From: Diplonema japonicum
Taxonomy: Eukaryota > Protista > Euglenozoa: Diplonemea
Length of the DNA stretch: 64,000 nt
Reading direction: 5' to 3'
Assembly: GCA_964019335.1 (NCBI GenBank)
Contig: OZ025658.1
Coordinates: 186,001-250,000 of the forward strand
Shown one piece after another: positions 21,656 to 57,100 of this stretch. The notes under the pieces were generated by a model that was not told the origin of the DNA, searched no databases, and saw only the letters and a list, made by a program, of their open reading frames with translations. A program made the translations under genes and the position numbers. Position 1 is the stretch's first letter; each line of letters begins with the position of its first letter.

Positions 21656-23566
21656 CTATTCTTTAAGGTATGCGTTTTTGCGCTCACCGGCCGCGCTGTA
21701 CTTAGTCCCCGTTCTGGGGGCTCTGGCGGGTTCCTACTGCGGTGGTAAAACTGCGGGGCAGCCTTGTCCCTGCCGACAACTGTAATTGCTATTGTTGTTG
21801 CGCCGGCCCTTGGGGCAGCAGCAGCGGGGTGGTTGGGTGCTGCGGGTCGACCGCCATCTGCGTGGGGGTGCTCGCTGTGGACCTCGCACCGGACTCGACA
21901 CCTTCCCGCCTTTCTCTTCACCGCCTGCCGTTCTCTTCCTGCTGCCACTGCTTGTCAGCGCAACCGCCGCCAGCTCGGTAAGCTGCTGCTCCACCTCCAT
22001 CAGCCGGGCTTGCGTTCGCTCTGCTCCTCCTGCATCCGGACAATCTTGTTCAGTGCGTCCCGCAGCGCCTTCGACATGGCCTCCTGGTCAGCCTGTCTCC
22101 TCTGCTGTTCGTGATGGAGCTTCGCCATCGTCTCCCCGTGTCGGCGATCTTTCTCCGCGAACTCGGCCTCCTTGGCCTGCCACCACGAGTGGAACGACTG
22201 CTCAGCTTCGCCGTCCCGCTTCGGTTGCTTGGCAGGTCGAGGCTGCGCGGCGGTTCGTAGGGGAGGGAAGTCATTCGACTTCGTGCTCTTCTTTGCCGCA
22301 GGTGGAGAGGCTGGCGTCGGTTTCCTCGGCCCACCCCTCGGTCCCGCTGTGTCGGTACAGGGTGTCCAGGTCTGCCCGGGCCACCACCAGGCATAGCTCG
22401 GCGCAGCCGTCCCTCGTTGACCCCGACCTTGGCTCGACCCGTGCTGCGCATTTGCTCGCAGCCCAGCGGACGAGGTCCCTCCTGGCGCTGTGGAAGTCCT
22501 TTCTGGTCTTCTCTACCAGGTAGACCTCGGCGGTACAGCTTACCACCGCGGGGACCGTCGTCGCCTGCTTGACCTGCTTCAGCGGAGGGCCGCCCTTCGC
22601 GGTCACCCACAGCCTGCGGACACACCTCCCTTTGCCGCCGTCGGTTGCAAGAACCACCTGCTCTTGCTCTCCCTGCATCGTGGGGAGCTTGCTTCTGGAC
22701 ACCAGGGTGGGACCGCTTGTCGCCGGCGTCCATCAGCCACAGCGACGCTTCCTTCTCCATTCCTGCCGGCACGAGCAGGACTGACCTCCTGCCCACCTGC
22801 GGCGTCCAGTCACCAGAGAACGCCTCCCAGCCGTTCGCCACCAGTACCGCGTCTTCCTTCGGCTTCGTCTCGCCGTCTCCGTCCTTGGCCTTCCGCGCGG
22901 CTGCAGCTGCGGTCGCAGCCGCCTTCTTCTTCGCTCCCTCGCTCAGGTAGGGCATAGGGACCTTCGGGTTGTTGTAGGTCCCCGCCGCCGGGAGCTCCGT
23001 GCCCTCGCGCACCTCCAGCGTCACGTAGTGAGCGGCTACGAACCCCAGGTATATGGGGGTGCTCACTACGGGGTTGCGCGCAGCGAAAGACGTGCACAGC
23101 AGCTTCCCTTCTTTCACCTGGTAGCAGGCCAGGTGGCGCCGACATACCTGGCTGACCGCGAGGAGCTGCAGGATGCTCCCCATGCCCCGTCCCTCGCTTG
23201 CACGTACTCCCCGTAGCGCTCTGGGGCGTATAATAGCGCACTGTTGTCGGTGGCTGCCAGATGGCTGGCCACCAGCTCCCTCAGTGCCCCTCCAGCGGAG
23301 GTGCCCTGGTGGATCGCTACCGAGGTCGCTCGTAGAGGCACTCTCCTTCAGTTTTGGAGTAGTCTCTGATCGAGACTCCACCTCCTAGCTTCGCCAGGAG
23401 CTCGGCCTTCGCCTTGCTCACCTCCCCGTTCGTCCCGCGGCCGAAGCCTTCGCCGTTGCCACCCCCCACCATGTGGCACCGTTGCCCGGGGTTCAACCTC
23501 GAGGAGGTCGCTCCCACCGCACTGGACGTCGATGATGTTGTTTAACCCAAATTCAAGAACCCCCGG
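21656..23566 (-). mobile_element. Internally deleted non-LTR retroelement: 5' HDV-like ribozyme, frameshifted OTU-like protease ORF, 3' end AGAATAG, flanked by poly(T)
   Basis: The 3' 113 nt (21656-21768) are near-identical to the end of the RT-bearing element (48640-48760). T14 runs flank both ends on the sense strand. Confidence 0.85.
23437..23563 (-). ncRNA. HDV-like self-cleaving ribozyme at the element 5' end
   Basis: P1 GGGGUUC/GAACCCC; P3-L3 ACC-UCCUCGA-GGU; J1/4 GGGCAAC; P4 UGCCAC/GUGGCA; J4/2 GGCGAA; P2 GCGGU-GGGAGC/GCUUCG-GCCGC. Confidence 0.85.
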
Positions 23567-23949
23567 AAAAAAAAAAAAAAGGGCAGCCGACAAAAGGTTC
23601 GTGAAGGAAGGGAGAACAATTAAAAAAAAAAATTACTCCTAGAACTTGACACTACACGAACACTTCCAACTGGTACCTTTTCTTTTCTTTTCTTTTTTTT
23701 TTCTTTTGAGAGAAATATTTTTCAAAGGGGGGGAGAGGTTTCCTTTTTCTTCTTCTCCGGTTCTTCTTGTTTCCCCTCCCCCTCCTTTTCTTTGGATTTT
23801 GAAAGGGGGGGGAAAAACAAAAAAAAAGAAGGAAGAAAAATACCTCAGATCCCCGTTTGAAAAAAAAAAAAAATATTTCCCCCCACTCTTTTAAAGGCCC
23901 AAATCCCATATCCCATTTCTTTAAGCTTTACAACAAGAAAACACTACAC

Positions 23950-24011
<62 letters not shown>

Positions 24012-24024
24012 CTTCTTCTCCCGT

Positions 24025-25215
24025 TCACTTCTTTCTCCCCCAAATAATCGCTTCGGTTTGTTTCAAAATAGTCCGGAGATACTCGTCCTCCCAATCTTGT
24101 TTTTCGTGCTCGTGCACCAGGCGGGACAGCATGGAGTACCCCGGACCAAGGGAACCCACCGCCTTTGCAAGCTTCTGTGAAACGGTCGATATCTTACACT
24201 TCACCACATTCTTCATCACAAACACTTTAGCATCAGCATAGCCGTCGTCTACCCGCACCACGATAGGTTCAAGTTTGTTGGCAGCATGTTTTGGAGAGTC
24301 TTGTAGAACTCGTAGTTCAGTCTTTGGCACAGTGTACATCACCCCAAGCGTAGCGGCAGTAGGGTCCTTAACAATGGTGAGGTGCATTGAAGGGTTTGCC
24401 ACCGAACCGTAATCCGTTGTATCCTGTCCGAAAAATGCAGACTGATACCCATCCAAGGTGCAAATTGCAACATCTGTGTACGTAAAACCAGGTTTCCACA
24501 TATCAGTTCAAAACAGAATAATTGCTCTGAATCGTTGTTGATCCTCGACACTCTCACGGGTTGTGCCTCTGGAGGGCCTGCTTTGTGTATGTGCGATTTA
24601 CCAATTTCATGTGACGGGAGGTTTAACTCCGGTATCCATTTTTGGCAGGGTTCGCAGAATACAGATTTTGCCTTGTTGCGTTCGGCGAGCTTTGTAATTT
24701 CGAGTTCTTGCTGGACGAATTCTTCGTCTTCTGTGAAACCTGATTCGGTTAATGCTGTTTTGTGGGCTTCCATGGCCACGTGGCTGTTGAAGGCGAAGGC
24801 GTGGACAAGGCGTTTGCATGCATTGCAGTCGTATACAATATCAGAATCCTTGATGAGTTTTACGTAGAGGCACCTGTCGTTGGGGAGCTGGTTGGACACG
24901 TGGAGGTCTTCGTACTCCGCTAGGCGTTTTTGTTTCTTTTTCGCTTTTTGCTCGTGGCATTTTCTTTTTCTGTTTTCCTTGGCCTGCTGGATCTCCTCGT
25001 CGCCCTTCGCACGCAGGTAGCTCATCAACCCCTCCGGGACATCGACACCCAGCGTTTTGTATTTCTTGGATTGCAAGTGCGAAATGGTAGTGAGCGCCGT
25101 ATGGAGCTGGATGGATTTTTTTTTCCCCCTCCCATACCGTCATATTTGTCGCCTTTACGTAATACTCACCATTTTGACAAGTAAATATTATGTTGTCACA
25201 ATTTTCAAACGGCAT
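24025..25215 (-). pseudogene. Zinc finger-ChaC-like paralogue with a 1-nt frameshift near 24509 (pseudogene or assembly error); intron 25107-25137
   Basis: Collinear similarity to the 20256..21535 gene. One extra G restores ...LFCFGTDMWKPG. Confidence 0.7.
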
Positions 25216-25944: not shown

Positions 25945-27069
25945 TTATAATGTAGTTAAGCAACATACGAGGTGGAGATATTTGCATGTGTTGCCTGCCC
26001 GGCAAGAACCGGCCCGAAAGTGGGTGCACGCAGCCTGGAAAAAAAAGTTTTTTTTAAAAGATTTTCAAAAAAAAAACCCGATCGATTGCGGTGCGCTGGT
26101 TGGTGCCCACCGTGGACTGGGGGACCTACACGTGCTTGTCACCATTCTGCGGTGCCGGCCGTCGGGGTTTGCCTTTCAGTCATGGATGGCATCTGCACTA
26201 AGAACATCGGCTGCAGCCCTCTAAGTAGGGAGTAGGGAGAAGGTTTGGGCGGACGAGAACAGGGGTCTCTTGTCGTAGCCATGCGTCGCTGGTGCACCCA
26301 GGTTCCTCAGGTAGTGTGTACTGCAGGAGCGCGGCTTTTCACTCTAATAAATCGCTCTTCCCACTACTTCGTTCCCCTACAAGTACTTCTTTGCTCCAAG
26401 GTATCACCTCAGACCTCGTAGCAAAGGTAGCACTTCCTTCGCGCCTAGCGCCAGCCCTTCTCTTTTCACCCCCGCGGACACGTTCTCCTGCTGTGCTTGC
26501 CTTGCAGGGGCACTCTCCCATAGCGCGTGCTCCGTCGTGCCGCTTGGTGGTCGACATCACATGTGAGCTTCTGTCATCTTCTTGCTCACACCACCGTGAA
26601 TATTGCTCCACAGATGACCCTCCTGGAAAAAAAAGAAAAATTATACCTGTGGCCTTGCGTCCTGCCACTTAGATGCAGCGTTGGTCCCATAATATTCAAC
26701 AAAGCCTTCGATTGTGTAAGGATTGCCTTCGTCCATCCGCTTCTCAGGGGGGGCCATGTCCCACTGAGCTGTCCCACCGTAGAAGTCGATAAACTCTGCC
26801 CTTGTATAATACGTCCCGTCAGCATCCGCCTTTCTTTCCTCCACAGCCATAGGGTTTTCGACCCACTCAGGCTCTTGCCCCGTGCTGTTAAGAAAATGAA
26901 GCATTTCTTGTTCCATTCTGCTGTCTAGCTGTCCCCCATCTGCTGTAATTCCCTGCGGGACCACGCTTTCGGGGTCGCACTCTGCTTCTAGTTGATTGGC
27001 GAATTCATCGGCTCCCTCCTCTTCTGCGATTTGGTCCAAGAGCCACTTCTCTTCCTCTTCTGTTAACAT
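25945..27069 (-). CDS. Protein with two ExRxDxxGxxYTxxxFxxxYG repeats and a CCCH zinc finger; join(25945..26034,26647..27069); 3' end uncertain
   Basis: Intron 26035-26646 joins ..ARPQ in frame to AACTHFRAGSCRAGNTCKYLH (C-x7-C-x5-C-x3-H). Confidence 0.75.
26077..26626 (-). mobile_element. Decayed 5'-truncated LINE remnant in the intron T-tract
   Basis: Fragmentary peptides RRVICGAIFT, EHALWE, LRNLGAPATHGYDKRP and PQNGD match the LINEs at 48.6 and 55 kb. T-runs flank both ends. Confidence 0.75.
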
Positions 27070-27845: not shown

Positions 27846-27870
27846 AATTCTCAGCTGCTGAGGGTTTCAT
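27846..27870 (-). promoter_or_regulatory. 25-nt motif conserved downstream of both NOX/FRE copies (copy B)
   Basis: AATTCTCAGCTGCTGAGGGTTTCAT is identical at 34186-34210, in otherwise diverged flanks. Confidence 0.5.
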
Positions 27871-29431
27871 CCTGTGCACTATTTTCTTTTTTTCCCCCCC
27901 TTCTTTTATTTTCCTTTTTTCTTTACAAACCTCCTCCAATCCCGCAGAAGGCTTTGTCCTTTTTCTTCTTCTTTTAAAAAAAAAAAGTTATATAGGCCCA
28001 CGAGAGGGTAGCCATTCCTGGCATCAAGACTGCGAAAATAAAGAAAATTCTTTTTTTTTGCCATGGAAAAAAAAAAAAAGGGCTTTTTTTGAAGAGGGGG
28101 AAAAAAAAAAGAAATGGTTTAAAAAAAAAAGGGCATAGAGGGAGCGGCACGTCTGAGCGTAACTAAAGGAAAAGAAAAAATATAAGAAGCTACGATTGGG
28201 GAAGAATAAAATCTTGGTGGGAAAAGGCAAAAAAGATTTTAAAAAAAAAGGGAAAGGACACATGTATGAGTCTCCTTTACTCTCTCTCTTTTTTTGATTC
28301 CCCTTCTCCCTGTGTGTGTTTTTCCTCCCCTCCGTATCCGGCAACTGCTGTTTTTTTTTTTTCTTTTTCCCTTGATTGTTCTTTTTACCGCTCAGAAACC
28401 TTGATTTCGATTAGTGAAAACAAATATGCCGATGCTACCCTCCTTCCTCCTTTTTTTTTTTTTTTTGTGAACAAAAAAAAGGATGTAGAAGAAATAAAAA
28501 AAAAGAAAAAAAGCAGGATTATTAAAATATCCAATAAAAGAGAGGGAAGAGAAAGGTAGGATAAAAGTAAAAGAAATATAAAAAAGGCCACTGTATAAAA
28601 TGCCATCCGAAAAGAGTGGGAGGGAAAAAAGAGTTAAAAAACGAAAGGGCAAAAAAAAATATTTAGAGGAAGAAAAAAAAGGGGGGGGGAATCGTAAAAA
28701 GAAATAAAAAGAATGTAAATCGGAAAAGAAAAAAAAAAAGAAGAAGCTCAATAGTGCTTCATGCATGTTTTCTTTTTTTTATTTTGGTGCAACAATCAAG
28801 TTAAAACTGTGAGTTTTTTTTTAAAAAAAAAAAGATTTTTGTTTTACATCAAACTTTCTAAATTCTCATTCACCATCTTCTTTGCCCCCCCTCAGGCCTT
28901 TTTTCCCCAATTCTCTTCTACCCCTAAAAGATTTTTAAATTCCTTGTTTTCAAATCTCTTTTTTTTCTTCCCCCTCTTCAATTTCTACCAACAACCTGCT
29001 GGTAGGGAGGCAAATGAAAAAAACGAGAAAGAAAAAAAAAACGGGGTGGGAACCAAGGTGAATGCAGATTATATATTAAGAAACTGGAAAAAAAAAATTA
29101 AAAAAAATAACAAATGTGGCCTTTACTTTTCAAGATCTTTTTGTCATAATATATCTTGGTCTTTGTAAGTTGTTTTTTTTTTTTTTTTCCCCAACAAAAA
29201 AGTAGTGTGACCCGGTAGAGCGTAAGTTACTTTTTAGTTGAAATTCATGAAGGAGGTGGAGGGAAAAGGGATAAGAAAACTTTAAACACGTGGGGGGGGG
29301 GGGGGGGAAGAAATTCAATCAATAGATTAAAGGAGCAACAAGCTTGCGGTACTTTCATTACATTCCATTTTGTGTTTATACGAAATAAGGTTGTGATTCC
29401 AATATTTTTTTTTTCCTCATTCAGTTATCAC

Positions 29432-32400
29432 CTAGAACATGAAGACCTCCTTGTGGAAGTCGAACTTGTGGGCGAAGGCGGCAGCCTCGACGTCGTCGAC
29501 GAGGAGGGCGGGTCCGCAGGCGAAGACGGCTGTCTTCTTCCCGTCGCACTCTGTGAGGAGCTTCTCCCAGTCGGGGCGGCCCGTCTTCAGGGGGAGCTCG
29601 TACACGGGGTCCTCGCCGTCGTCGGATTGCTGCACCTCGAGGTACTCCTTCGTGTTCTCCTTCTCCGTGTTGTGCAGCTCCCACTGGACCTCCGTCCCCG
29701 CCTTCGAGGTCACGGACGCCTTGTGCAGCGCTGCGAGCTCCTTCGAGAAGGGGGCGAACCCTTCCGCCCCGCGGCCCGACCACACCATCGACACCACGCA
29801 GCCTCCCGAACCCTCCACGGGCTCCGTCGCCTTCTTGTTGTTCACCATGTGGTCCACGAAGGCCAGCGCGGGGGTGATCCCCACCCCGCCCGTGCACAGC
29901 ACAATGCGCTCGTACCCGCCCGTCAGGAACGGGAGAGACGGCGCCCCGAACGGTCCCTGCACGCGCACCTTCCAGTCCGGCGACGCCTGCGCCACCAGGT
30001 GCGTGAAGCTCGCCGCCGACGGCCCCATGTCCTTCACGAACAGCGAGAACTCCGTCCTCCCGTCCTCCCTCGCCTCTCCCCTGCTGGCGATGGAGAAGGG
30101 GTGCCACTGCTGCGCGCAGGCTGCCCCCGGGAGCCCGGTCCCGTTGAACGACAGGTTCACGAGCACGTACTGCAGAGGCTCGAAGGTGAAGCCCCTCTTC
30201 GCGATGGTGAGCTTCGTCACCCCCGCACGCGGCTCCACCTTCACCAGGTTCGTCGCGGTGCAGAAGGCCGCCGCGTGGCGCCCGAAGACGTCGATCACGT
30301 ACAGGAAGAGCGGGATCACCATGAAGATCATGAGGGACGGGTAGTGGATCCAAGCGAGGGGGAAGACCACCGCGTACAAGCTGTGCGTCACCACGAACAC
30401 GTACCAGTGGTTCCTGCGCACCCAGCTCAGCGAGGTCACCGCCATCAGCGTCATCGCAATCCAGGCAATGAGACCCGCGAGGGGAGGGCCGTGGGGCCAG
30501 CCGATCGTCCACGCGACCAAGCGCTCCGCCGCCTTGCGCGCAGCGCGGGTGTGCCCCGCCCCGTTGATGTACACCGCGTTCCCCTGGGCATCGTTCCCCG
30601 TGAACGTCCCGAGGAGCCAGTAGCGGTAGTGCGCCACCCACATCCCGAAGCCGTGCACCAGGGTGAGGACCCAGATCCAGCCACCGATCTTCCTGTGGAA
30701 GGCGAGGGCGCGCTCGAACGGGATCCCGAACACCCACAGGAGCAGGCTGTTGCGCGACACGGGAAGCAGCTGCACGCACAGCAGACCCGTCACCACACCG
30801 CCGATCCCACGCGGAATATCCCCGACAAGGTTGTTGATCTCAGAGTGGTTCCACACGTACATGAAGCACAGCAGGCACCACCCGATCAGCCACAGCGACA
30901 TCACCACCTCGCCCCAGCGCAAGCGCAGCGGGATCGGGGAGATCGAGTCGATCTCTTCCAAGGGACCACCGGTCGCGAACGGCTTCACAGGAGAGCCCTG
31001 CACCTTCCCCTTCAGCAGGAACCCCATCACCATCAGGAACAGGAGGAGGCCCACCCAGGCTGCGATGAGCCCCGCGATCGTCGCACCCTTCGACCCCCTC
31101 CACTCGAAGTACAGGTGTCCGCCGCGGGTCTTTCTGTTCCCGTCCTCCATCTTCATCCACACAAAGTACGGGAAGTTCGTGCGCGTGCAGGACTGCTGCC
31201 CGAGACACCCCGCCCCGTCGATGACGCCCCTGGTCCAACCACTACTGCGAGCAACGACGCCACCACTGTCCCCACCACCGTCCCCACCGTCCCCACCAGT
31301 GGTGGTGCCATCACCACCGTCCGCAGCCTGCAGCATGGAACCCAGGCGGTTGTTGGTCGTCGTCGCCGCTGTCGACACCTCTGCCGCGTTAACCACAGGG
31401 TACGAGAGGGCCAGGGGTTGTCCAGAGGCCGGGAGCCCGTCGGCGAAAGCCTCCCCAAGGGGATCCGTCCCCGCAGGCGCCGAGTAGGAGGTGCTGTCGT
31501 ACTGCAGAACGAACTCCACGTACATGGACCCAGCGGTGAGCCCCGTCCGCGTCGTCGTCACGGCACCGGGCTGCGCGGCCCTCCCCAACCTCGTCAGGAT
31601 CTGCGCCCTGTTCTGGCAGGAGGAGGTCGGAACCGCCCCGTTCGCGTCCACCGTGCAGAGCTTGTTCACAACGAGGGTGTACAGGGGCGTGTTGCTGTTG
31701 GTCGTCGTCGTTGACCCACCACCGGTCGTCGTCCCGTCACCACCGTCACCCCCGGTCGTCGTCGTCCCGTCACCACCGTCGGCAGTTGTGTCACCACCAG
31801 TCGCCGTCGTCCCGTCGCCACCGTCGGCAGTTGTGTCACCACCAGTCGCCGTGGTCCCATCGCCAGTCGCCCCGTCACCGTAGTTGGCCGTTGTTCGTGC
31901 AACCCTGCCGTTCGAGTCACCGTCAGCAGTAGTGGTGTCACCACCGTCGGCGGTTGCGGTGTCGCCACCGTCGGCGGTTGTCCCGTCACCGCCACCATCG
32001 GCTCCATCGCCGGTGTTCGTTGCGCCGCCCGAGGTCGGTGTCGTGGTGGTGGTGGACCTCGTCGTCGGTGCGGTGAGGTTGTTGTGAAGGCCTTGGCCTA
32101 CGAACGTAGCGTTCGCGGTGTTCCAGAAACCGTCGTAGGCAGCAGCGAGGAGCGTGTTGTTCGCGAGGAGCGCGGCGAGGTCCCCGGTCACGGTCACCCC
32201 GATCGCGGACGTGTGCAGGACCGCCACCTGCTGCTGCACGGCAACGCTCCCGGCAACGACAGAAAGGCCGCCAAGGGGAAGCGAGTAGTTGTAGTTCGCC
32301 ATCACAGCAGCCACAGCAGCCTGCACGCTGGACGAGGACACCCCCCTCACGGTGAGCTGAAGGTGGGCCCTCCCGGGAGTCGCCGCCGCCTGCAGCACAA

Positions 32401-33787
32401 CAGCAACACCGTGCGTGGTCGTGGCGGGAGGGGTGAGCTTCGTCCCCAGCTCCGTCCCGGTCGAGCACGTGGTCGAGTTGTATGCCCCGTCCTGCCTCCA
32501 GTCGCAGATGCTGCTGATGCTCGTCTGCAGACCGGAGAAGGCCCCGGTCGTCGTCGTCGTCGTCGTCGTCGTCGACCCACTGTCGCCGTCGCCCGCCGTC
32601 GCCGTTCCGTCCCCGCCGTCAGCAGTAGTAGTCCCGTCCCCACCGTCGGCCGTAGTGGTACCGTCCCCACCGTCGGCCGTAGTGGTACCGTCGCCGTCCT
32701 GAGACACACGCCCATGCCTCCTGCTTGCGTCCCCAACAGCGGCGTCCCCGCCATCAGCGGTAGTAGTCCCGTCCCCACCGTCGGCCGTAGTGGTACCGTC
32801 CCCACCGTCGGCCGTAGTAGTCCCGTCACCACCACCGTCAGCGGTCCCCCCCGTGTTCGTGTTCGTGTTCGTAGAGGTGGGTGCGGCGGCCGTGCTGCCT
32901 GTGAGCTGCGTCACGTGCGCAAGGAACTCGTTCGCCACCGTGCGCACAAGCGCGTCGTCCGACCAAAAGGACTCGTAGGTCCCGGCGAGGGTCACGTCAA
33001 CGGAGATGATGGACTGCGGGGCAACAGAGGCGGGGACGGTGGTGACGCGCGGCGCACCGTCAGGGGAGAACCCGTACCCACCGAAGGTCTCGTCGGGGCG
33101 CACAGCGGCCACCGCAACCGTCGCAGCCTGGAACACAGCGTTTGCGTCAGAGCCGGTGAAGTCAATCTCGACGTAGATCTCGCCCACCGCCACCAGCACC
33201 CGTCCGTGTCTCATGTTCCCGTCCCCGTCCGTACCACCGCCGTCAGCAGCCCCATCGGCGCCATCAGCCGTCGCCGCCCCATCCCCACCGTCGGCGGCGT
33301 CCCCGGTGTTGGTGTTGTACGCCTGGGTGATCTGAGCGCGCGACTCGCACGATCCCCAGTTCCCCCAAGCCACAGCCGTCACGTTGCAGATCCTGTCCAC
33401 CACCACAGAGATGCTTCCGGTAGACGAGGAGGTGGTGGTGGTGGTGGTACCGTCACCGTCCGCTCCCGTTGCCCCGTCGGCCCCTGTTGCTCCGTCGGCC
33501 CCTGTGTCGCCGTATTCCAGGGCACGCGCCGTCCTCTTCGTCCCGCCCAACGCGACCCCGAACCTCTGCTCCACCTCCGTCAGGAGAGCCATCAACTTCG
33601 TGTGGTTCGACTGCAGCGTGCTGAACTGCCCTTGGAGCACCAGCCCCACCGTCGCCGTGTTTGTGGTCGCCGAACTAGGCGACGCAGGTCCCAGGTCGGA
33701 ACGCTCAACCCGCACAATCCCCGCAATGAAGAACCCTATCCACATCCCCAGCAGGATGAGGGCTGGTATCAGCTTTAGTGCTGCCAT
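29432..33787 (-). CDS. Ferric reductase/NADPH oxidase-family protein with a large Thr/Gly/Asp-repeat N-terminal ectodomain (copy B, 1451 aa)
   Basis: Haem His pairs (FHR..H, H..H), HPFSI, GPFG, GGVGITP, CGP and a terminal FHKEVF; N-terminal signal/TM segment. Confidence 0.93.
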   Translation of the reverse strand: MAALKLIPALILLGMWIGFFIAGIVRVERSDLGPASPSSATTNTATVGLVLQGQFSTLQSNHTKLMALLTEVEQRFGVALGGTKRTARALEYGDTGADGATGADGATGADGDGTTTTTTSSSTGSISVVVDRICNVTAVAWGNWGSCESRAQITQAYNTNTGDAADGGDGAATADGADGAADGGGTDGDGNMRHGRVLVAVGEIYVEIDFTGSDANAVFQAATVAVAAVRPDETFGGYGFSPDGAPRVTTVPASVAPQSIISVDVTLAGTYESFWSDDALVRTVANEFLAHVTQLTGSTAAAPTSTNTNTNTGGTADGGGDGTTTADGGDGTTTADGGDGTTTADGGDAAVGDASRRHGRVSQDGDGTTTADGGDGTTTADGGDGTTTADGGDGTATAGDGDSGSTTTTTTTTTGAFSGLQTSISSICDWRQDGAYNSTTCSTGTELGTKLTPPATTTHGVAVVLQAAATPGRAHLQLTVRGVSSSSVQAAVAAVMANYNYSLPLGGLSVVAGSVAVQQQVAVLHTSAIGVTVTGDLAALLANNTLLAAAYDGFWNTANATFVGQGLHNNLTAPTTRSTTTTTPTSGGATNTGDGADGGGDGTTADGGDTATADGGDTTTADGDSNGRVARTTANYGDGATGDGTTATGGDTTADGGDGTTATGGDTTADGGDGTTTTGGDGGDGTTTGGGSTTTTNSNTPLYTLVVNKLCTVDANGAVPTSSCQNRAQILTRLGRAAQPGAVTTTRTGLTAGSMYVEFVLQYDSTSYSAPAGTDPLGEAFADGLPASGQPLALSYPVVNAAEVSTAATTTNNRLGSMLQAADGGDGTTTGGDGGDGGGDSGGVVARSSGWTRGVIDGAGCLGQQSCTRTNFPYFVWMKMEDGNRKTRGGHLYFEWRGSKGATIAGLIAAWVGLLLFLMVMGFLLKGKVQGSPVKPFATGGPLEEIDSISPIPLRLRWGEVVMSLWLIGWCLLCFMYVWNHSEINNLVGDIPRGIGGVVTGLLCVQLLPVSRNSLLLWVFGIPFERALAFHRKIGGWIWVLTLVHGFGMWVAHYRYWLLGTFTGNDAQGNAVYINGAGHTRAARKAAERLVAWTIGWPHGPPLAGLIAWIAMTLMAVTSLSWVRRNHWYVFVVTHSLYAVVFPLAWIHYPSLMIFMVIPLFLYVIDVFGRHAAAFCTATNLVKVEPRAGVTKLTIAKRGFTFEPLQYVLVNLSFNGTGLPGAACAQQWHPFSIASRGEAREDGRTEFSLFVKDMGPSAASFTHLVAQASPDWKVRVQGPFGAPSLPFLTGGYERIVLCTGGVGITPALAFVDHMVNNKKATEPVEGSGGCVVSMVWSGRGAEGFAPFSKELAALHKASVTSKAGTEVQWELHNTEKENTKEYLEVQQSDDGEDPVYELPLKTGRPDWEKLLTECDGKKTAVFACGPALLVDDVEAAAFAHKFDFHKEVFMF

Positions 33788-34185
33788 TGGTCACTACTTC
33801 TCTCTCTCTCTCTCTTTTTTTTTCTTTGTGTTGTTTTTTTTTTTTTTGAAAAGAAGTTTCAAAAAAAAAAAGAAAAACCTGTTTTATTTTATTCTATATT
33901 TGGTGAGGGAGGGGAGAAAATATAAACGAATATAATTTTGGGAGGGACGACAAGAAGAAGAAGATGAAGATGAAGATGAAGAGGAAGAGGGGGGGAGGGG
34001 GGGGAAAGAAAAAGAGATGGAAAAGTGAGGAGGAGAAGAAAAATAAAAAGGGAGAGAATGAAAATAGAGAAATAAGAAAGAAAAGAGAGAGAAAAAGAGA
34101 ATATTATTTGTAGGAAGGGGACACAAAGAAGAAAGGTAGAAGAAGAAGAAGGTTTATTTCTTTTGAGGAGAGGGAAAGAGAAGAA

Positions 34186-34210
34186 AATTCTCAGCTGCTG
34201 AGGGTTTCAT
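34186..34210 (-). promoter_or_regulatory. 25-nt motif conserved downstream of both NOX/FRE copies (copy A)
   Basis: Identical to 27846-27870. Confidence 0.5.
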
Positions 34211-35460
34211 TTTATTTTATTACCTCTCCCCTTCCCTTACTTCTTTTACCTGACTGTTTTCGTTTTGTGTTTCCTCCAAACCTTTTTTTTTTTTTTTTTT
34301 TTTTCCTTTTTTTTTTCCTCTTTTTCTTTTTGCTAATTCTCTGCATTTTCCTTTAATTCTTTTCTCTCTCTTTCTATACAGTGCATTCTTGCTACTCCTT
34401 TACTTTCTTCCTGTATACAACCTTTTTTTTTCTCTCTTTTAAAAGTATATCAGTTCAACGGGGGTGCCATTCCGCATTACGTAAAAAAAAAAAAAAAAGA
34501 AAAAAGCAAAAAGCAAAAGAAAAAAAAAGAAAAAGAAATTGCTGAATAGAAAAGACAACAAGGACCACTTGTATATAGCCTTCCAGAGACAAGACAAAGG
34601 AGGGGGGAGGGAAAGGGGAACTGGCCGTTGTTTTGCCATTGTGTGTTCCCTTTTTTGCTTAGACAAAAAGAAAGAAAGAAAGAATGAAAGAAAGACAAAC
34701 ATACAAAAAAGAAAAAAAAAAGAAGAAGAAGAAAAGAGAAGATAGACATGGTTTGCATAAGAAACGTATACAAGTATACAAGTCTTCTTTCTTCTTCTTC
34801 TTCTTCTTCTTCTTCTTCTTCTTTTTTGCGTGATAAACAGCTTACACCTTCGCTTTTCTTTTATTTCTTTCTTTCTTTCTTTTTTTTTTTTTTTTTTTTT
34901 TTGTTGTTGTTGTTCTTCTTCCCCAAAAATGTCCTGTGCACTGCCAACAACCTTTGTTGGCAGGGAAGGCAAAATTAAATTTGAAAGAGAAAAAAAAAAG
35001 GGAGGGGAGGGAACAGGGGGGGATGTGGTCCAAGTTCTTTGTGTACAAATTCAGGCAAATAGAAATAAACGGAGAGAGGAGAGCTAAATTAATATCTTAC
35101 TTTAAGAAGAAAAAGAAAACAGATCAAAAGCTGTGTAATATGGAAATACAAATTTTTAGGAGAAATAAGGCTTAAGAAGGGGATAAGAAGAAAGGGAAAA
35201 GAAGAAGAAGAAAAGGGGTAAGGGTATCACCTAGAATCAAGTCTGCACATATATGGCAGAATCGCTTTCGGCTTGGGGTTGTCGGGAGAGAAAGCAAATA
35301 GTGCAATTGGTCTCCCTTTTTTTGTCACCCTGTAAAAACAACAGCTTTTCCCTTCTGCCTCATTCAATCTTAAAGCTCCTATATAGCGGTCAGCTTTTTC
35401 AAAAAAAAAAAAAAAAGTAGAGATGGTTGTTAAATATTTTGTTGTTTTCTTGTGGAAACC

Positions 35461-39816: not shown

Positions 39817-39922
39817 GTTGCAGGTAGTTCGAACCTCTGAACTTGTCAACTGTTGTAAGAAAAAAAAAGCAACCTGCCAGATAAGTAAACAACGAGAAGG
39901 TAAAAATGAGGAAGCAAATAAA

Positions 39923-40933: not shown

Positions 40934-41034
40934 CCTATGCGTGAAGGGTGGGGGGGGGGGGGACAAAACAAACCGATCGAACATAAAAGTTTAAAAGAGG
41001 AACACCGTGTAAACAGCAACAAGAACGGGGAGGG

Positions 41035-41077
<43 letters not shown>

Positions 41078-41081
41078 TGGA

Positions 41082-41855
41082 TCATTTCACACCCATAACC
41101 GATCGCAAGAAGAACATCGCCGACATTTTCTTAGCATGGTACACAGGGATGTTGCACCCTGTGATGTCCATCTCGGTTATGTTCTTGTTCTGCTTGACGA
41201 TGAGGAGCAAGACACGTCCCGCGGTTGCAGCTAGATACCTGTTGCTGGCTAAGGACAATGAGGTGAGGTGCGGTGTTGACGCAACAAGGCTGGTTAAGGC
41301 AGGAAGGGTTTCTTCACGAAGATCATTCCAAGACAAGTCCAGCGTCGTCAGGGAAGGGTGCCCTGCTAGCGCGGAGATAAGAGGAATCGACCCGTAAGGC
41401 CCCAGAATGTGCCCTGAAAAGTCAGCCGACACAGTTTCCTTTGTTAGAGACGCAAGTTTCTTCAAAATGGTGCGGTTTACCTTAGGTCGCTTCTCTTCGT
41501 CATCAGTGATGTGGCATAGACAGCCTCGTAAGTACTTTTGCTGGTATTCTGTTCCTGTGACAACTTCTTCTGGTACCGTCAGGCTTTCCAAGCATTCTAT
41601 TTCCTCGTCGATGGTTTTTGTCTCTATGGCTCTCTTCAGGAAGGCGTCGCATTTTACTATGGGGCGGACCTTCACCGTTTCGCCTCTTTCTTCGAAGTCG
41701 AAGAGGCAGCGCTCCTTGAGTTTTTCCTTCACGCCTTCCTGCTCCACCGCTTTTGCCAGCAGCTTGATAACTTCGTCTATTTCCAGCATCTCGTTTGCAT
41801 CTGCGTTGTTATCGATGCCGAGCGTGGTTTGGATTTTCTTAAGGCTGTACCTCAT
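41082..41855 (-). CDS. RNI-like leucine-rich repeat protein
   Basis: LTTLDLSWNDL, LTSLSLASN and ITEMDITGC repeats. Confidence 0.8.
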   Translation of the reverse strand: MRYSLKKIQTTLGIDNNADANEMLEIDEVIKLLAKAVEQEGVKEKLKERCLFDFEERGETVKVRPIVKCDAFLKRAIETKTIDEEIECLESLTVPEEVVTGTEYQQKYLRGCLCHITDDEEKRPKVNRTILKKLASLTKETVSADFSGHILGPYGSIPLISALAGHPSLTTLDLSWNDLREETLPALTSLVASTPHLTSLSLASNRYLAATAGRVLLLIVKQNKNITEMDITGCNIPVYHAKKMSAMFFLRSVMGVK

Positions 41856-42380: not shown

Positions 42381-42411
<31 letters not shown>

Positions 42412-42421
42412 CTACCATTAA

Positions 42422-43006: not shown

Positions 43007-43025
43007 TTAAAAAAAAAAAAAAAAA

Positions 43026-48329: not shown

Positions 48330-48451
48330 ATTTTCTTTTTTCCCCTCCCTTCCCCGCTTCTTCAGAATATGTTGCCACAAAAAGAAAATGGGGGGTATGC
48401 ATGCTGTACACTGTCATGAGGAGAAGGGGGAGGGGTAGAAATAAAGAAAAT

Positions 48452-48605
48452 CTAATGTCGCTTAGCTTGCGGGTAATAAGTCATATTGTTGAAGGCGCCT
48501 CTCTTCCCTTGCTGTTGAGGGCTGAAATTTGCCGCAGCAGCAGCAGCGGCGGTGGCCTGCGGAAGGAACTGCGACGCAGGGATCGTATTTCTGGGTTTTT
48601 TTGTT

Positions 48606-48641
<36 letters not shown>

Positions 48642-51623
48642 ATTCTTTTAAGGTGCGTTTTTGCGCTCACCGGCCGCGCTGTCCTTAGTCTCCGTTGTCC
48701 CCGTTCTGGGGGCTCTGGCGGGTTCCTACTGCGGTGGTAAAACTGCGGGGCAGCCTTGTCGGGGTCTGCGACAGGTACGTGTCACGCAAGCCTTCGATGC
48801 TGCTCATGGTTCGCTCCGGGAGTACTGGCCTCCTGTCATACCCGTGTGTGGTCGGTCCTCCTATACAGCGCGGGGAGTTGACGCGATCCACTCGCGCTGC
48901 TGGGAACGCCGTCCTTCTGCCATCAGCGTGGTACAGGTCCTGGACACGTCTCAGCACATACCTCAGCCTCCTTGCCTTGACGCCCAGGTCCTCCACCTTG
49001 CCCACTTCCCCGCCGTCGTCTAGCGGCAGCTCCATCTCCCGCTCGAAGTCGAGGGCAAGCTCCAGCGTCGTAACCGTCGTGTGCCGTCCAGGGGCGTCAT
49101 CCCACAGCAAGCCACTCAGCCACCTCAGCACCGGCCCCAGCAGCCTGTCCATCACCTTCCCCGATGCTCCCAGCCCACGTAATTCGGCCACCGTCGGCGT
49201 CGGGGTGTGCCCTTCCCGTCACGACCACCCGCCACGGGTATGTCTGCGTCTGCAATGCGCGGTTCGCTTCCACCGCCGTATCCCTCAGCGTGACCACCTC
49301 CAGCAGGTACCTTTGCACCAACAGGGCCCTCGGCTTGTCTTGGCATCCCCTGGGCACTATCCCGTGGAGCGCCGTCGCGTTCGGCATGGTCGCCGGGTCG
49401 AGGCTCGCATACTCTGCCTTGCCCCGCACCGCATCTCCGAGTTCGCATCGCCAGAGGGCGTGCTCCAGCACCTCGGTGTAGCTGCCGTAACGCTCCCCAC
49501 ACACGTCACAGAGGTGCTGCAGCGGGTTGTCCGGCCCCTCCGCCACTCCCCGCACCGCAGGGTACACCGCAAACACCGCCCCAGCAATCAGCCTCCTCAA
49601 CCTGTACGCCGCCATCGGGTTGTTCGCGAGCGCCCTCCACCACCCGTTCGTGACCGGGTCGGCCCCCTCCGGCATGCCGCTGTGGGAGGTCCTCCCTTCT
49701 GCTTGTTCCGCTGCTGTCATGGCCCGTGCCACTTGGCGGATCTCGTGCTTGCGTTCCCGCTCGGTCGCGGTACTCAGCCCCTCCACAAAACTCCAGCTCT
49801 TCCCGATCGCCGGCAGCCATCGTCTCACTAGGGTTCCCACTGGTCCCTGGGCTTCCACGTCGCTCTGCAGGTACAGGGCGGCACACCTTCCCATCCGGTC
49901 CCACAGCTCTGCATCCGACCTACCAACCTTCACCACCGTGCACAACAGTCGATAAAGCGTCACCACCAGCGGGTCCGTCGTGTGCCCCGGCAGCAAGATG
50001 TTCGCTACAGCACACGGTGAGCGCATCTTGAACTTCGGTCCCCAGAGGCATGTCGCAACTCTCGACCGGATTGTGCCTGCATCCACTTTCGAGGGGGGGG
50101 CATACGCAACACCGTAGAGGCAAGAGGGGAGGATGGAGCTGGAGATGATCCTTGCCTTCTGTGAGAATCCCAACGGCATGGCAGCCAGCCTTCCGCACGC
50201 CCGTTCCATTCCTACAAGGGGCTTGGCCCTGTGCTCGCCGTCCATGCAAACCTTGATGCCCAGGGCGCTGATCTCCGTCTTGGCTGCAAGCACTTCCCGC
50301 CCGCATTTCACCGACCCGGACCCTTCTGTGGCGAACATGTCCGTCTTCCTCAGGTTGAGACTCATCCCCGTTAGCAGAGAGAACTCGCCTACCCCCGCTG
50401 CCGCCTTCTCCAGTGCGCTGAGCAGAGCTGCAATCAGGTACACGTCATCTGCGTACGACAGGGAATCTGCCCCGGGCACCTCCGCCATGATCGCCCTCAC
50501 CATCACCAAAAAAAAAAAAGAAAAAAAAAGATCCCCTCACATACTTTGCAACCAAACCGTTATAATACTGAGAAAGAATGGCCGCGGAGTCCATGTCGCT
50601 GTCCTTTGAAGGGCTCTTACCATTTGCCTCGGCGGCACCCGACAGCAAAAGCAGTCTGTCCGACAGCAATCCACCGATTTCAGTACCAATCCATTGCTTG
50701 AAGGTGGGCTCCTCCAACGAGATTCTGTCTACCAAAGAAACAGCGGTTTCACCCTCGGGCCCGGACAGGGCCGCAACGACCTTGTAAAGGTAAGTGGTAA
50801 GCGGGTCTGAGGAATTCTGCCCCGCGAAGGATGCAGGGTCGGTTTTGTTCTGGCATATTGCGAAACACGATGGGATTTTTGTAGGCGGCAACACCCGCGG
50901 CCAGGTCAAGCTCACTCTGTCAAAGGTCAACCGAAGAATGTACAATATACTAGCAGAGAACTCCGATGCAATGTCGGGGACATGCAGTATAAAAGAACCA
51001 CCCTTCGACACTGACAACAAGGCAAGAAGCAGCCTCGCCACTGTGTACGCCCGTTGCGTTCGTGTTTTTGACCCGGCAGGCTCTGCCCCAAGAAGAACTT
51101 GCAGCCCGGCATTTCTCGTCCTTTGCTGCACCGCCCCCGTGAATGCCTTGATATTCGATGGCTCCCTTGGGTCGCCTGTTGTGTCTGCTCCTGTGAAGTG
51201 GAACGCCTTTGGAAGGAATCTCGTTGTTGGGGATTCTTCCAGCCTGGACATAGTCGACCCCATTCCTATCCCGTTTGCGGAGGGGGCGTTTTGTGCGGTG
51301 TTTGAAGCATGGCACAGGCCTTCCACCCAACCCCCTGCACCGCCTTCGATGTCGCCCAGCCATCCCAGGTTTCCCCCGAACTGAAATTTTCTCTCTAGTT
51401 CCAGGCACGCATAGGTGCTCCTGTCCAGGAAGCCCGGTAGCACCGGCCCGAGCACAGGGTCCACCTTCTCCAGGCACCGCAGCCCGCCCCTTTCGAAACA
51501 CGCCTCCTCGTGCGGGGCCAGGTCTTGCAACGTTTTCTCCGAGACAACTCTGTACTGCGGCCTGTCTACTTCCCCATCCCACGCGGTCTCCAGGCAGTCC
51601 CAAAGCTCTGCGAGATCCTCCAT
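48452..51623 (-). CDS. FtsJ/CMTR-like cap 2'-O-methyltransferase homologue; join(48452..48590,50545..51623)
   Basis: GDIEGGAGGW, GADTTGD and KGGSFILHVPD motifs. Removing the LINE-containing intron 48591-50544 joins VAK to NTIPASQF in frame. Confidence 0.75.
48640..50507 (-). mobile_element. 5'-truncated non-LTR retrotransposon (RT C-half, CCHC finger, C-terminal ORF) inside an intron poly(T) tract
   Basis: SYADD, LNLRKT and CDVC..EHALWRC; ends AAGAATAG followed by T32; preceded by T12. Confidence 0.92.
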
Positions 51624-51754
51624 TTTTTTTTCTCCTAACATTTTTGTCCCACAAATGAACAATAGGAAAAAGAAGAAGAAAAAAAAAGACTATTTTGTGG
51701 AAGAAAATAAAATAAAATCTATGGTACACCCCCCCCCTCCCCTTCCCTTTTCGG

Positions 51755-53101: not shown

Positions 53102-53403
53102 TTTCTTTTCCTTTTTTTTTTGTACGTAATCAAATTGATATTTTAAAATACCCGGTATTACGCAAAAAAAAAGGGGGGGGGGCATAATCTTACGTACCCG
53201 TTATTGTAACGATATCGAATTAAATAACGTTATCTTACTCAGAATAACGTTATTTTATTCTGTGAAAAGCCCTATTTTGACGATGTGAGCCCGACCTCTA
53301 AAACCCAAAACAGAGCCTTATTTTAGAGAAAATTGGTTTTTTCGGAATTGTAATCAAAATGCTGGGTCAGGGTCGATTATTTACCCATATTTCAGGCAAA
53401 ACG

Positions 53404-53472
<69 letters not shown>

Positions 53473-54124: not shown

Positions 54125-57100
54125 CTAACTGTCCCTCCACTGCTCCGGTTCCGGGTCGTCAACCTGAAGGATGTCCACTTCACTAGTATTATCAGCCTTC
54201 TGCATATGACTTCTTGCTTTAAACCAGTCGGAAAGGTAGACAGCAGGGTACAGCGGCCTGTCCCGAAGAATCTCATGAACCGCCTTATTATTATTTTTTT
54301 TTTTTCCCTCCCAAAAAAAAAAACTATTCTGTTAACTGAATCGTCCAATACTACCTATAGGCGCTCTTGCAACGACCACCACAGCCATCGCCAACGTGCC
54401 AAAAAATGGGCTAAACTCGCACACTGGTGTGAGCTTCAAGGGAGCTAAACGTTTCAGACATGACGTGCCACACCCATAGGCCTCACGACCGGGGAGGGGG
54501 GGCATTTATCTTTCGCCCGTAAGCTAGAGTGCGCATGCATCCCCAGCTCGCTTTGGGAGGTGTTGCCAACACCTGGGTCGCTTCGCGGTCCGACCTGCTG
54601 CCCAATTCAAAGCGCGGTTGCGGTGAATCCAAGCCCCCTAAGCATCGACACGATTAACAAAGGGGTTTGTTACGCCGGGATATCTTGTTCACCAATGCTC
54701 CATACGCCCCCTGTTGCCAGTTCGCCGGATGAGCATACTGCAGGGACTTCCACTCATCCGTTGCCCGGTGGGTACCACGAGGAGGTCAGCAACAATTCTA
54801 TACTTTTGGCCACGTAGGGCCTGTTCTACATTTAGTATAGTCCCACCTGAAAAAAAAAAAAAGAGATGAGATAAAGGAGGTTCCTGTTTTAGAACGTCCC
54901 CCTTGTCTCTACTTATCTACCCCTTTCTCCCTTCTGGGGCCTCGGCCTTTCTTTCTTTTTTGGCTGTGTTGCCTTTCTCAAAGTATCCTCCCTTTCTTCT
55001 CGCCACTTTCTGCCCAGTTTCTTAAGGTCCTTCTTGGTTTTCTCTGATGCAAAAACTGGCCTTCTGTTCCATCCCAGACTCTTCTTCGCACCTATGGTTC
55101 TGAGCGCGTGGTTCTTCTTGCTCTCCGCTGGGAAGATCCGCTTGCCTCTGACCTTCTTCTGTATGCGTGCTGTGTCCCACCCTTCTTGGATTCTTTCCAG
55201 GAGGCCGTGGAAACTCCGCGCTTTCTTCTGTATCATGTCTAGATCACCCTTCTTCCCCGTGATCGGCTCGACGCCCAGCGTGTTCTCGAAGTCTAGTACG
55301 AGTTCCATTGTGGTGACTGTCGTCTTCCTCGGTCCATCGTACCACTTCAGCTTTTTGAGCCACTTGACGATGTCTTCACCGTGCTTCATCATCAGGCTCC
55401 TTCCATTCAGGTGGCGCATGAGCGTTTCCTTCCGTTATCTGTTCCCAGGGGTGCGTCGTGTACGTTTCTAGCATTCTCTTGTCCTGGAGAAGCTGGTCCC
55501 GTTTTGCCACCACTTCCAGCAGGTAGTATTGCGTCTTCCTCAGCCGGTGTTGGTGTGTTTGGTGACCACGCGGGAGCATTCCATGTAGCTGCATGCAGAT
55601 TGGCATTTCCGTCTTGTTGGCCACTACTTCTGCATGTACTTCCTTCTGTTGCACCTCCTTCGCCACACTGCATTCCCATAATGCGTGTCGCAGCATGTTG
55701 CTCTCGTCCTCCTCCGCATCGCACGCGTCGCATGTGACCTCGTCTGTTGTTGGTCTCTTGTTCACACGCTCGTGTGTCTCGTCCCCTTCCTCTTCCGAGC
55801 TGTCCTCGCTTTCGCTCTGCTCGCCCTCTGGGGGCCGTCTGGTGATTTTGTCCTGGTACCACGCCTTTGGGTGGGTGTAGAAAACCCCTCCCGCCACGAT
55901 CCTCCGGAGGTCTCTCGCTGCCATTGCTCCTTGTGGTCCGAGTCTCATCAGCTCTCGCCACAGGTCGTTCGTGCGTGGGTCTGCGCCCCGGTCTAACCCC
56001 TCCATCGAGCGTCTTCTGTCCTGTATGTGTTCCGCACGTCCTGACCTTAGCTTTTCTCGCACTACATGTGCGAATTTGTCCTTGTTCTCAGCTAGCATTT
56101 CGGTGAATTGCCCCCAGTTTGTGCTGATCTTCGGGAGCCACCGCTTCATCGCGTTGCCTATCGGGCCCAAAGGTGTCGTTCTTGTCGGGTCTTGGTACCC
56201 TTTGGCAAGTCTCTGGCACCGCTCCCACACCTCTCCCAATTTTCGTCTCGTTCTGTATATGGCTGCTAGTGCTCTGTAGGGCGCTGCTACCTCTGGGTCG
56301 TGTGTGTGTCCGCTGAACAGGTTTGACAGCACCGCCGCTGGTGATCTTGTTCTGTACCTCGGTCCCCACAAGGCGTATGTCGCGCTTGATGTGAGCGATT
56401 TGAGGTATCCTTCCGACGGCGGCGCGAATGCAACATCATACAGACAGCTGGGTAGCACCGTTGTTCGCAGGACTTCCGCTTTCTGCCAGAAAGAGAGCTG
56501 AGTGGTCGCGAGCCTCCGTAGCGTGTCGCCCGCCGCCCTGGCCCTGGTGTTGTCCGTCTGCGTCTGACCATCCGTGCGTATCCTCGCCCCCAGGATCTTA
56601 AAAAAGAAAAAAAAGAAATCATACATCCTCTACCATTTTTGCAATATGCTTTGCTTGTAAATATTCGATATTTTGAGAGCACGTGGCTGACAAAGGCTGC
56701 GCCAGATCGCTGAGGCAATGTCTTGAGTGCAAGGAGGTCGTGCTCTGCCCTTTTCGAGATCTTGTCGAACAGGTGCTTACTTGACGCGACAGCGCCTGCA
56801 AAGAATCACGTTTCTTAATAAAGGTCTCGAAATTGGTTAGCTTGGGCTTCCAGACAGGTGAACGCTGCTGTTCCATGAACTTGGGAACGCACCGCATAAA
56901 CTGAACGTTCTTGCAGTTAATAAGAAGACGCGAGTAGTACACATGAAGCAAGCTTCTCTTGTTTGTCCGTGCGAGAAGCAAAGCACAGGCGGCTTTGATG
57001 ATAGCGAAGTCAAATAATGTTTCATCGAACCTGCCTTCTCGGAGCTGGAGAAGCTTCACAGGGTCGGCAATGACCTTTGCAAGCTGTCTAAGCCGGAGTT

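Follow-up and report, generated by a model that had tools for sequence, protein, structure and literature searches.

Tail-less LINE-type retroelements in sense-strand T-tracts of Diplonema japonicum, with predicted HDV-like ribozymes at their 5' ends

A 64,000-nucleotide stretch of the Diplonema japonicum genome (G000:C11:186001-250000, called the window here) contains five retroelements that lie in T-tracts of their own sense strand and end without a poly(A) tail. Our reading is that they belong to recently active, target-primed long interspersed elements (LINEs) of a diplonemid-type euglenozoan, equipped with an apurinic/apyrimidinic-type (APE) endonuclease and accompanied by non-autonomous passengers, and that the T-tract is their target. 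We put the probability of this reading at roughly 0.7. The elements were singled out in an original prediction made from the window sequence. All five are present on the minus strand at the predicted coordinates, and each is a dispersed repeat in the 62.5 Mb assembly (132 contigs). At least three families had been predicted and four were found: a LINE with OTU, APE and reverse transcriptase (RT) domains (the OTU-LINE; elements 1 and 3), a partner that resembles a short interspersed element (SINE; element 4), a second LINE family (element 5), and an older repeat (element 2). The features are collected in Table 1.

Results

An autonomous LINE with OTU, APE and RT domains

A genome search with the last 121 nt of element 3 gave at least 40 scored copies among 191 candidates, at 93-100% identity. 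The sequence upstream of twelve copies showed homology of all lengths, up to about 6.4 kb, and the copy at L043:126-6618 is full length (6,493 bp); it is the reference for all OTU-LINE positions given here. Its two open reading frames (ORFs) share one frame, and the 3' untranslated region (UTR) of about 50 nt terminates in AGAATAG without a tail. Comparison of 44 loci with this copy by blastn revealed a constant 3' end, variable 5' truncation, and 95-100% identity between copies. Judged from its sequence, the autonomous element is an APE-type retrotransposon without long terminal repeats, that is, a LINE, and it is recently active.

ORF1 and ORF2 are separated by a single in-frame UAG in the context CAA-UAG-CAA-UUA-CAG (L043:2429-2443; equivalent to about 21789-21791, minus strand, in the window). 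Because ORF2 is in the same frame as ORF1, read-through of this UAG is the likely route of ORF2 expression. The stop has the hexanucleotide context of the leaky UAG of tobacco mosaic virus.

The original prediction had called for a full-length copy as the way to the endonuclease type and the RT phylogeny. The recovered copy identifies the endonuclease as APE-type, and the RT could be placed no finer than in a diplonemid-specific lineage. The closest proteins to ORF2 are EukProt transcriptome ORFs (45-50% identity), followed by LINE ORFs of Diplonema papillatum (32-36%), and the closest solved structure is human L1 ORF2p (E 6e-20, versus 1e-14 for R2Bm). Pfam detected no RNase H domain in ORF2 at E values up to 0.1, and no L1Tc/ingi proteins were among its significant relatives. 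Automatic names attached to the Diplonema matches ('X-element', 'R2DM') are unreliable. One metagenome scan for relatives elsewhere returned a single 3.3-kb contig that stops short of the element 3' end.

T-tracts flank both ends and are duplicated target DNA

The claimed absence of poly(A) tails, with T-runs on either side in element sense, is true of all five elements in the window and extends to the whole genome. Genome-wide flanks were tabulated from pattern matches that print 20-22 flanking bases; the patterns omit copies with G at the last flank position. All 31 fetched OTU-LINE copies end in ...CCTTAAAAGAATAG and continue immediately with at least three T. Among the first 100 listed of 144 OTU-LINE 3'-end matches (22 flanking bases printed), at least three T follow directly in 93, compared to a 3.5-4.4% chance of TTT at a random window position, and about a quarter begin with at least 22 T. 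An A-run follows none of these 100 ends, and the poly(A) or short tandem-repeat tail typical of LINEs is replaced in them by the unique AGAATAG end. The SINE 3' ends start with TTT in about 22 of 26 cases, and about 84 of 100 listed 3' ends of the element-5 family (from 198 matches to its 3' 14-mer) start with TT. A T-run also lies upstream in about 20 of 22 distinct 5' junctions, from truncated and full-length copies alike.

In copies with a short or interrupted tract, one string recurs at both ends of the element: TTTATT in L011, TTTTTTTA in L017 and TTTTCTTT in L002. Pure T6-T7 duplications occur in L005, L014, L023 and L043. Read from these junctions, the matching flanks are target-site duplications of 6-8 nt or more, and the T-tract is duplicated target DNA rather than an added tail. 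The competing idea is that the 3' T-run is a tail borne by the element, an oligouridylated or U-tailed RNA having been copied into essentially random targets. The downstream runs do vary like tails, from 3 to more than 48 T, and they are often longer than the upstream runs. However, T-runs precede 5'-truncated copies whatever the truncation point, and the duplications that contain scattered non-T bases are identical at the two ends of the element. The upstream run exceeds the downstream run in L014 (11 versus 6), L023 (28 versus 7) and L028, which is not expected from an added 3' tail. An unoccupied paralogous site in L036, TATCTA-T16-ATCTGATAG, already contains the T-run, compared to TATCAA-T11AAT7G-[LINE]-T6-ATCTGATAG at the filled L043 site. 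We regard an element-borne tail as very improbable. A T-run derived from a poly(A)-tailed antisense template was ruled out, since it is the sense 5' end that is truncated while the sense 3' end does not vary. For the five insertions of the window, empty sites were sought as flank paralogues in the window and the fetched loci, and none were found there.

Three features support the proposed priming from the A-run strand: the direction of the ORFs, a 3' end that stays fixed while 5' truncation varies, and the T-rich duplications. Since the ORFs run towards AGAATAG, and copies differ at the 5' end but not at the 3' end, first-strand synthesis starts at the sense 3' end. With synthesis starting there and the downstream flank being T, the primer must be the complementary strand with its oligo(dA) 3' end.

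Elements are co-oriented with host genes

Co-orientation with host genes had been claimed for the window, where it applies to all five elements. Genome-wide, 16 independent insertions have an ORF of at least 300 aa in their flanks, and 15 of them match the longest such ORF in orientation (p = 2.6e-4, or 1.6e-3 allowing for target skew). The target skew is mild: the insertion flanks contain 225 T-runs and 171 A-runs of at least 10 nt in element sense. The window itself contains 95 T-runs and 97 A-runs of at least 8 nt, in agreement with the statement that A-runs are also abundant, and about 150 T-tracts of at least 6 nt per strand. For the element-5 family, the first 100 listed copies gave 55 adjacent same-contig pairs, of which 50 have both members on one strand (p = 1e-10). 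This family and the OTU-LINE share strand domains, including switch regions on C5, C10, C11, C38, C40, C41 and C52. Two of the few discordant OTU-LINE copies (C35:414697 and C47:234949) are also among the few without a T flank. All long host ORFs of the window are on the minus strand, which places it within a single unidirectional gene cluster. The orientation pattern fits the long unidirectional gene clusters of the D. papillatum genome (PMC10161547). The original prediction had listed random flanks or orientation, poly(A) tails and a failure to splice over the elements as outcomes against it; the genome search found neither random flanks nor random orientation and no poly(A) tails, and splicing across elements 4 and 5 was seen.

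Two models for the strand bias were considered, and the data do not separate them. In the first, target-primed reverse transcription (TPRT) is intrinsically strand-specific with respect to transcription or replication. The nick would fall only on the template-strand A-run of a polycistronic unit, where oligo(dA) would pair with the read-through U-run. The element would be a promoterless passenger, processed by its own ribozyme and by host splicing and trans-splicing, that builds head-to-tail trains. In this model the recreated T-tracts and the 5'-junction bases would provide a polypyrimidine-CAG upstream and a polypyrimidine tract downstream. We advance this model tentatively.

In the second model, integration is specific for T-tracts but blind to strand, and co-orientation results from selection against antisense copies. 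Antisense copies would expose precursors that rely on polypyrimidine/AG signals to pyrimidine tracts and a donor-like GTATGC site. The LINE sense strand is 58% purine and has 5 pyrimidine tracts of at least 8 nt, compared to 43 in the antisense, and the antisense of the 3' end reads AAG/GTATGC, like host donors. A sense bias of retroposons is known for Leishmania SIDER2 (82%; PMC11520807). However, fragments of only 128-400 bp are co-oriented too wherever the flanking ORF allows a call (L002, L006, L014 and L018), and copies that are 97-100% identical mean that selection would have to act immediately. Selection is a possible but doubtful explanation. As a separate observation, the reverse complement of the LINE 3' end (21656-21680, plus strand) is CTATTCTTTTAAG/GTATGCG, near the host 5' splice sites GTATGT, GTATGA and GTATAA; this donor-like antisense might penalise antisense insertions.

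Predicted HDV-like ribozymes at the 5' ends

Elements 1 and 4 have intact 5' ends, and both had been predicted to begin with a hepatitis delta virus (HDV) ribozyme fold. In a motif and duplex search of these two families, all helices and joining regions could be drawn in the right order in both. The LINE parts are P1 GGGGUUC/GAACCCC, P3 ACC/GGU, L3 UCCUCGA, the GG for P1.1, P4 GGUGCCAC/GUGGCAAC and J4/2 GGCGAA; the LINE P2 is long (about 19 bp), and none of 500 shuffles reached its duplex energy of -28.9 kcal/mol. The SINE parts are P1 GGUGGG/CCCACC, a hairpin insert in J1/2, P2 UUGUUGCU/GGCAACAG (8 bp, reached by 12 of 500 shuffles), P3 ACC/GGU, L3 UCCUCGU, P4 GGAUGAGU/GCUCAUCC and J4/2 GGCGAA; its minimum free energy (MFE) fold includes P1 and P4. 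The conserved HDV core is present, with a C-rich L3 (UCCUCG), GG after P1 for P1.1 and the catalytic C of J4/2 (GGCGAA). In both families P2 ends beside P3 and resumes after GGCGAA. The P1 5' strand is the first 6-7 nt of each element, and full-length DNA copies begin at the P1 G-run, at G+1 to within a few bases. Direct reading of the sequences shows that P1 differs between LINE and SINE at three positions on both sides.

The best Rfam match of the LINE 5' end is HDV_ribozyme RF00094 (14.9 bits, permissive thresholds). In evalue mode the same 90 nt of the SINE 5' end match HDV_ribozyme RF00094 (21.6 bits), HDV-F-prausnitzii RF02682 (18.9 bits) and drz-agam-1 RF01787 (15.7 bits). These models align P3/L3, the P1 3' strand, GGGCAAC, P4 and GGCGAA, and they leave the P1 5' strand unscored across the J1/2 insert of ~45 nt. 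The core motif CCUCCUCGNGGN(7-8)GGGCAAC has 28 matches in the 62.5 Mb genome, all but one in the LINE and SINE families, compared to 3 for the reversed control. A genome search for more ribozyme families to use in covariation found the exact core motif in the LINE and SINE families only, and a mismatch search for variant P1 strands gave degenerate copies only, with no C73 variant. These data support, at the level of motifs, the prediction that the 5' ends carry an HDV-like ribozyme.

Three results count against this part of our reading. The Rfam scan of the whole window at gathering thresholds gave no match, the 14.9 and 21.6 bits comparing to 50 for RF00094. The MFE z-scores of 0.07 and -0.03 provide no thermodynamic support for the ribozymes. 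In most full-length LINE and SINE copies the T-run is separated from G+1 by 1-5 extra bases, often CA or CCA; if templated, these bases would place the RNA 5' end upstream of the predicted cleavage site. The predicted fold thus stands as a motif-level core in both elements, with scores below the Rfam gathering threshold and folding energies that do not stand out. The motif might not be an active ribozyme at all, the 5' end being set instead by the transcription start or by processing at a Y(n)CAG 3' splice or spliced-leader acceptor site. The low scores and the MFE z-scores near zero would agree with such a 5' end, as would the A, often CA, just before G+1 in 8 of 11 SINE and 5 of 8 LINE full-length copies, which creates T(n)CAG/G. 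However, the 5' end of no copy has the spliced-leader sequence, and two otherwise unrelated elements share the full catalytic core, with P1, P2 and P4 sequences that differ yet pair. The extra bases also vary (none, CA, CCA, AA, CC and CGA; window examples are 54848-54849 and 23565-23566), as untemplated additions at LINE 5' junctions do. We read them as untemplated additions, although the frequent CA is unexplained, and consider an inactive motif unlikely.

A SINE-like partner and the elements of the window

The AGAATAG end claimed for three elements was seen in elements 1, 3 and 4. Element 4 begins with the HDV-like 5' end, terminates in AGAATAG as the OTU-LINE does, and is followed by T10. 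It is non-coding, has T-run flanks of the LINE type, and belongs to a family of at least 11 full-length copies at 98-99% identity plus many 5'-truncated ones. Rfam scans of 54300-54900 gave no tRNA or 5S match, and no dedicated Pol III promoter test was made. The SINE and the OTU-LINE have the ribozyme core and the AGAATAG end in common, and the SINE is probably mobilised by the OTU-LINE.

Element 1 retains an intact 5' end and the last 123 nt, including the AGAATAG end. It sits in the spacer between two ChaC-like genes, as indicated by a Pfam ChaC match on the neighbouring ORF, and its 5' junction of T14 plus extra C was recovered as a pattern match at G000:C11:209549-209583. Element 3 has its AGAATAG end followed by T33, and T9 C T13 lies upstream. 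Element 5 ends in ...CATCTC and has T8 C T6 upstream; its family is represented in the genome by 173 exact 3' 22-mers and 198 3' 14-mers. The older repeat family of element 2 has at least 30 copies, and the flanks of element 2 are T8 and T10.

Head-to-tail stacking in one T-tract is frequent, and the window contains an example in which element 5 is joined to element 4 by T13. Each insertion recreates T-tracts, which leaves them open to further hits. The OTU-LINE copies L022 and L027 (G000:C10:207579 and C82:335637) both adjoin one downstream repeat that begins GGCGGGCCGTTGCTAACC. In the element-5 family, five copies (G000:C3:896509, C11:571075, C34:239071, C41:10693 and C48:65029) have the identical 3' flank TTATTCTGTGTTTATTTCATC, which could be a 3' transduction, a longer-ended subfamily, or repeated insertion into one repeat. 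A frame break in element 3 at 49195-49215 (minus strand) is a private 1-nt insertion, CCC to CCCC, and the frame is continuous in eight other copies. Element 5 shifts frame at the homologous place, as seen in element 5 alone.

Intronic elements and splicing

Four elements had been placed in introns whose removal restores in-frame host exons. This holds for elements 4 and 5, which occupy a single intron. Splice evidence was taken from assembled contigs of sequencing runs, and contigs in two runs join the exons on either side in frame (...AKMVED/AVHEIL..., then 52 codons up to the stop). The joint coincides with the splice sites and not with the element borders, so it represents spliced RNA rather than an empty allele. 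The intron would measure roughly 80 nt with its elements subtracted. The introns of elements 2 and 3 remain candidates, backed by GT..AG consensus sites and open downstream frames.

Table 1. Features of the window and of the full-length OTU-LINE copy. Positions prefixed L043 refer to that locus; all others refer to the window.
Feature	Position	Strand	Description
T-rich run directly 3' of element 1	21626..21655	-	T15 CTTC T9 in element sense
Element 1	21656..23566	-	internally deleted OTU-LINE copy; reference 1-1264, 1739-2334, 6371-6493 (blastn vs L043:126-6618)
Predicted LINE ribozyme (element 1)	23426..23563	-	overlaps ORF1 start codon
T14 run directly 5' of element 1	23567..23580	-	two extra C (23566-23565) separate run from G-run
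Element 2	26077..26626	-	divergent copy, ~83% identical to fourth repeat family (search of own genome)
Candidate intron of element 2			donor CAG/GTATAA, acceptor CCAG/; downstream exon encodes CCCH zinc finger
Element 3	48640..50507	-	5'-truncated OTU-LINE; reference 4625-6493, 98.3% identity (blastn)
Candidate intron of element 3			donor AA/GTATGT at 50544, acceptor CAG/ at 48591
Host intron holding elements 5 and 4	54284..56624	-	GT..AG, 2,341 nt; contig joint 54282->56624, runs X11 and X4
Element 4	54324..54849	-	526-bp non-coding SINE-like non-autonomous repeat
Predicted SINE ribozyme (element 4)	54711..54847	-	
T13 spacer, element 5 3' end to element 4 5' end	54850..54862	-	head-to-tail pair in one T-tract
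Element 5	54863..56599	-	5'-truncated second LINE family; 33% amino-acid identity to OTU-LINE ORF2 residues 853-1376 (tblastn)
ORF1	L043:137-2434		OTU cysteine-protease domain, Pfam OTU 1.3e-6
ORF2	L043:2438-6568		Exo_endo_phos 1.7e-11 (residues 28-237) upstream of RVT_1 2e-18 (residues 619-856), Pfam

Other features of the window

The genes that flank element 1 are both on the minus strand, at 20256-21380 and 24025-25076. The first encodes a ChaC-like C-terminal domain (Pfam 1.6e-12), the second is an apparent paralogue by translation, and both have zinc-finger-looking N-terminal regions. Homopolymers are hugely over-represented in the 64 kb, with 59 T-runs and 53 A-runs of at least 10 nt against a rough composition-based expectation of less than 1, and runs of 47-70 nt are present (for example 21397-21443, 23954-24010 and 53400-53470). 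A tandem duplication at 29431-41500 has a period of 6,029 bp and a 300-nt seed that is 100% identical; it bears very G+C-rich, repetitive minus-strand ORFs of 1,452 and 1,664 codons with 27-nt internal repeats. Runs X11, X12 and X13, which carry three other organism labels, contain contigs 90-99% like the SINE and the LINE, and X11 additionally contains host-gene contigs about 99% like the window. These contigs come either from mixed cultures or from this species, or a sister of it, filed under a different label.

Discussion

The data suggest the following route of integration. Integration is specific for T-tracts on the element sense strand, as the target and its duplication show. The endonuclease would nick the complementary A-run strand, and the oligo(dA) 3' end would prime at the last base of the element sequence in the RNA. 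A second nick at least 6 nt downstream would duplicate the T-tract on both sides. In read-through transcripts AGAAUAG would be followed by a U-run able to anneal to the dA primer, and such pairing is plausible because every source copy has a T-run downstream. The elements run in the direction of the long unidirectional clusters of the host and would be transcribed within host precursors, from which the ribozyme would excise a defined 5' end. Intronic copies would leave with the intron, as the spliced contigs demonstrate for one case.

In addition to the ribozyme scores and the 5'-junction bases, several points weigh against this reading. The pairing of the U-run with the dA primer is a conjecture. 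The empty-site comparison involves a paralogue with only 6 nt of upstream homology, which makes it supportive but not decisive. Long T-runs mask the true duplication length, and a short added T-tail is possible in those copies. One of the three candidate introns was checked with reads, from one run of unknown kind (X4) and one that is only guessed to be RNA (X11).

The system bears on how TPRT begins. Priming has mostly been studied with oligo(dT) on poly(A), as in L1 and Zorro3, or at a single rDNA site, as in R2, and a young, high-copy system of mirror-image polarity is a natural test of whether primer-template pairing or 3' UTR recognition sets the start of reverse transcription. A strand bias above 90% despite equal T- and A-tracts makes the coupling of integration to transcription or replication testable in a polycistronic genome. 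With the predicted ribozymes, the range of 5' HDV-like ribozymes would reach beyond trypanosomatid L1Tc/ingi to another LINE lineage, one of the diplonemid branch. The intronic copies illustrate a possible route for introns to grow from about 80 nt to kilobases with splicing kept.

Comparison with known systems

A literature search found no described T-tract-targeting, tail-less LINE, and the only published diplonemid genome paper leaves the transposable elements of this branch uncharacterised (PMC10161547). Zorro3 of Candida albicans is an APE-type LINE of the L1 clade whose new copies always lie in poly-A tracts, and annealing of the RNA 3' end to the nicked complementary strand has been proposed for it (PMC1965478). 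Both ends of Zorro3 abut the same homopolymer, as they do here. Zorro3 differs from the present case in its sense-strand A-tracts, its polyadenylation and its oligo(dT) primer, compared to sense T, no A-tail and oligo(dA) here. It has no ribozyme or OTU domain, and the searched passages of its report mention no gene-orientation bias.

The L1Tc/ingi elements of trypanosomatids are likewise a euglenozoan LINE/SINE system with a 5' HDV-like ribozyme in a polycistronic setting. L1Tc/ingi copies have poly(A) tails. Neither of two features of this clade, an RNase H after the RT and a poly(A) tail, was found in the OTU-LINE. Further differences are the 45-nt J1/2 insert and long P2 of the predicted ribozyme, the OTU domain and the leaky-stop arrangement, and the T-tract target is without counterpart in the clade. 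In L1Tc/ingi, NARTc, RIME and SIDER, the HDV-like ribozyme occupies the first nucleotides and frees the RNA from co-transcripts (PMC3185411, PMC4035085). These elements lie within polycistronic units, and SIDER2 copies in 3' UTRs are 82% sense (PMC11520807).

R2, RTE and CR1 are tail-less LINEs of the stringent type, and the OTU-LINE resembles them in having no poly(A) tail. In such LINEs a specific 3' UTR is presumed to be recognised by the RT, and the 5' HDV-like ribozyme of R2 cuts the RNA from a host co-transcript (PMC3774820). R2 differs in that its endonuclease is restriction-like and follows the RT, and in its single 28S rDNA target, whereas the OTU-LINE has an N-terminal APE and hundreds of dispersed targets.

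Human LINE-1 shares the APE endonuclease, TPRT, 5' truncation and target-site duplications. Intronic L1 copies are depleted in the sense orientation, whereas almost all copies are sense here. The human L1 endonuclease nicks 5'-TTTTT/AA and priming occurs on poly(A) (PMC8565326); the polarity here is the mirror image. Precedents exist for each ingredient: homopolymer targeting in Zorro3, tail-less LINEs in R2, RTE and CR1, 5' HDV-like ribozymes in R2 and L1Tc, and sense bias in SIDER2. What sets this system apart is the mirror-image primer polarity and the combination of these features in an uncharacterised LINE lineage.

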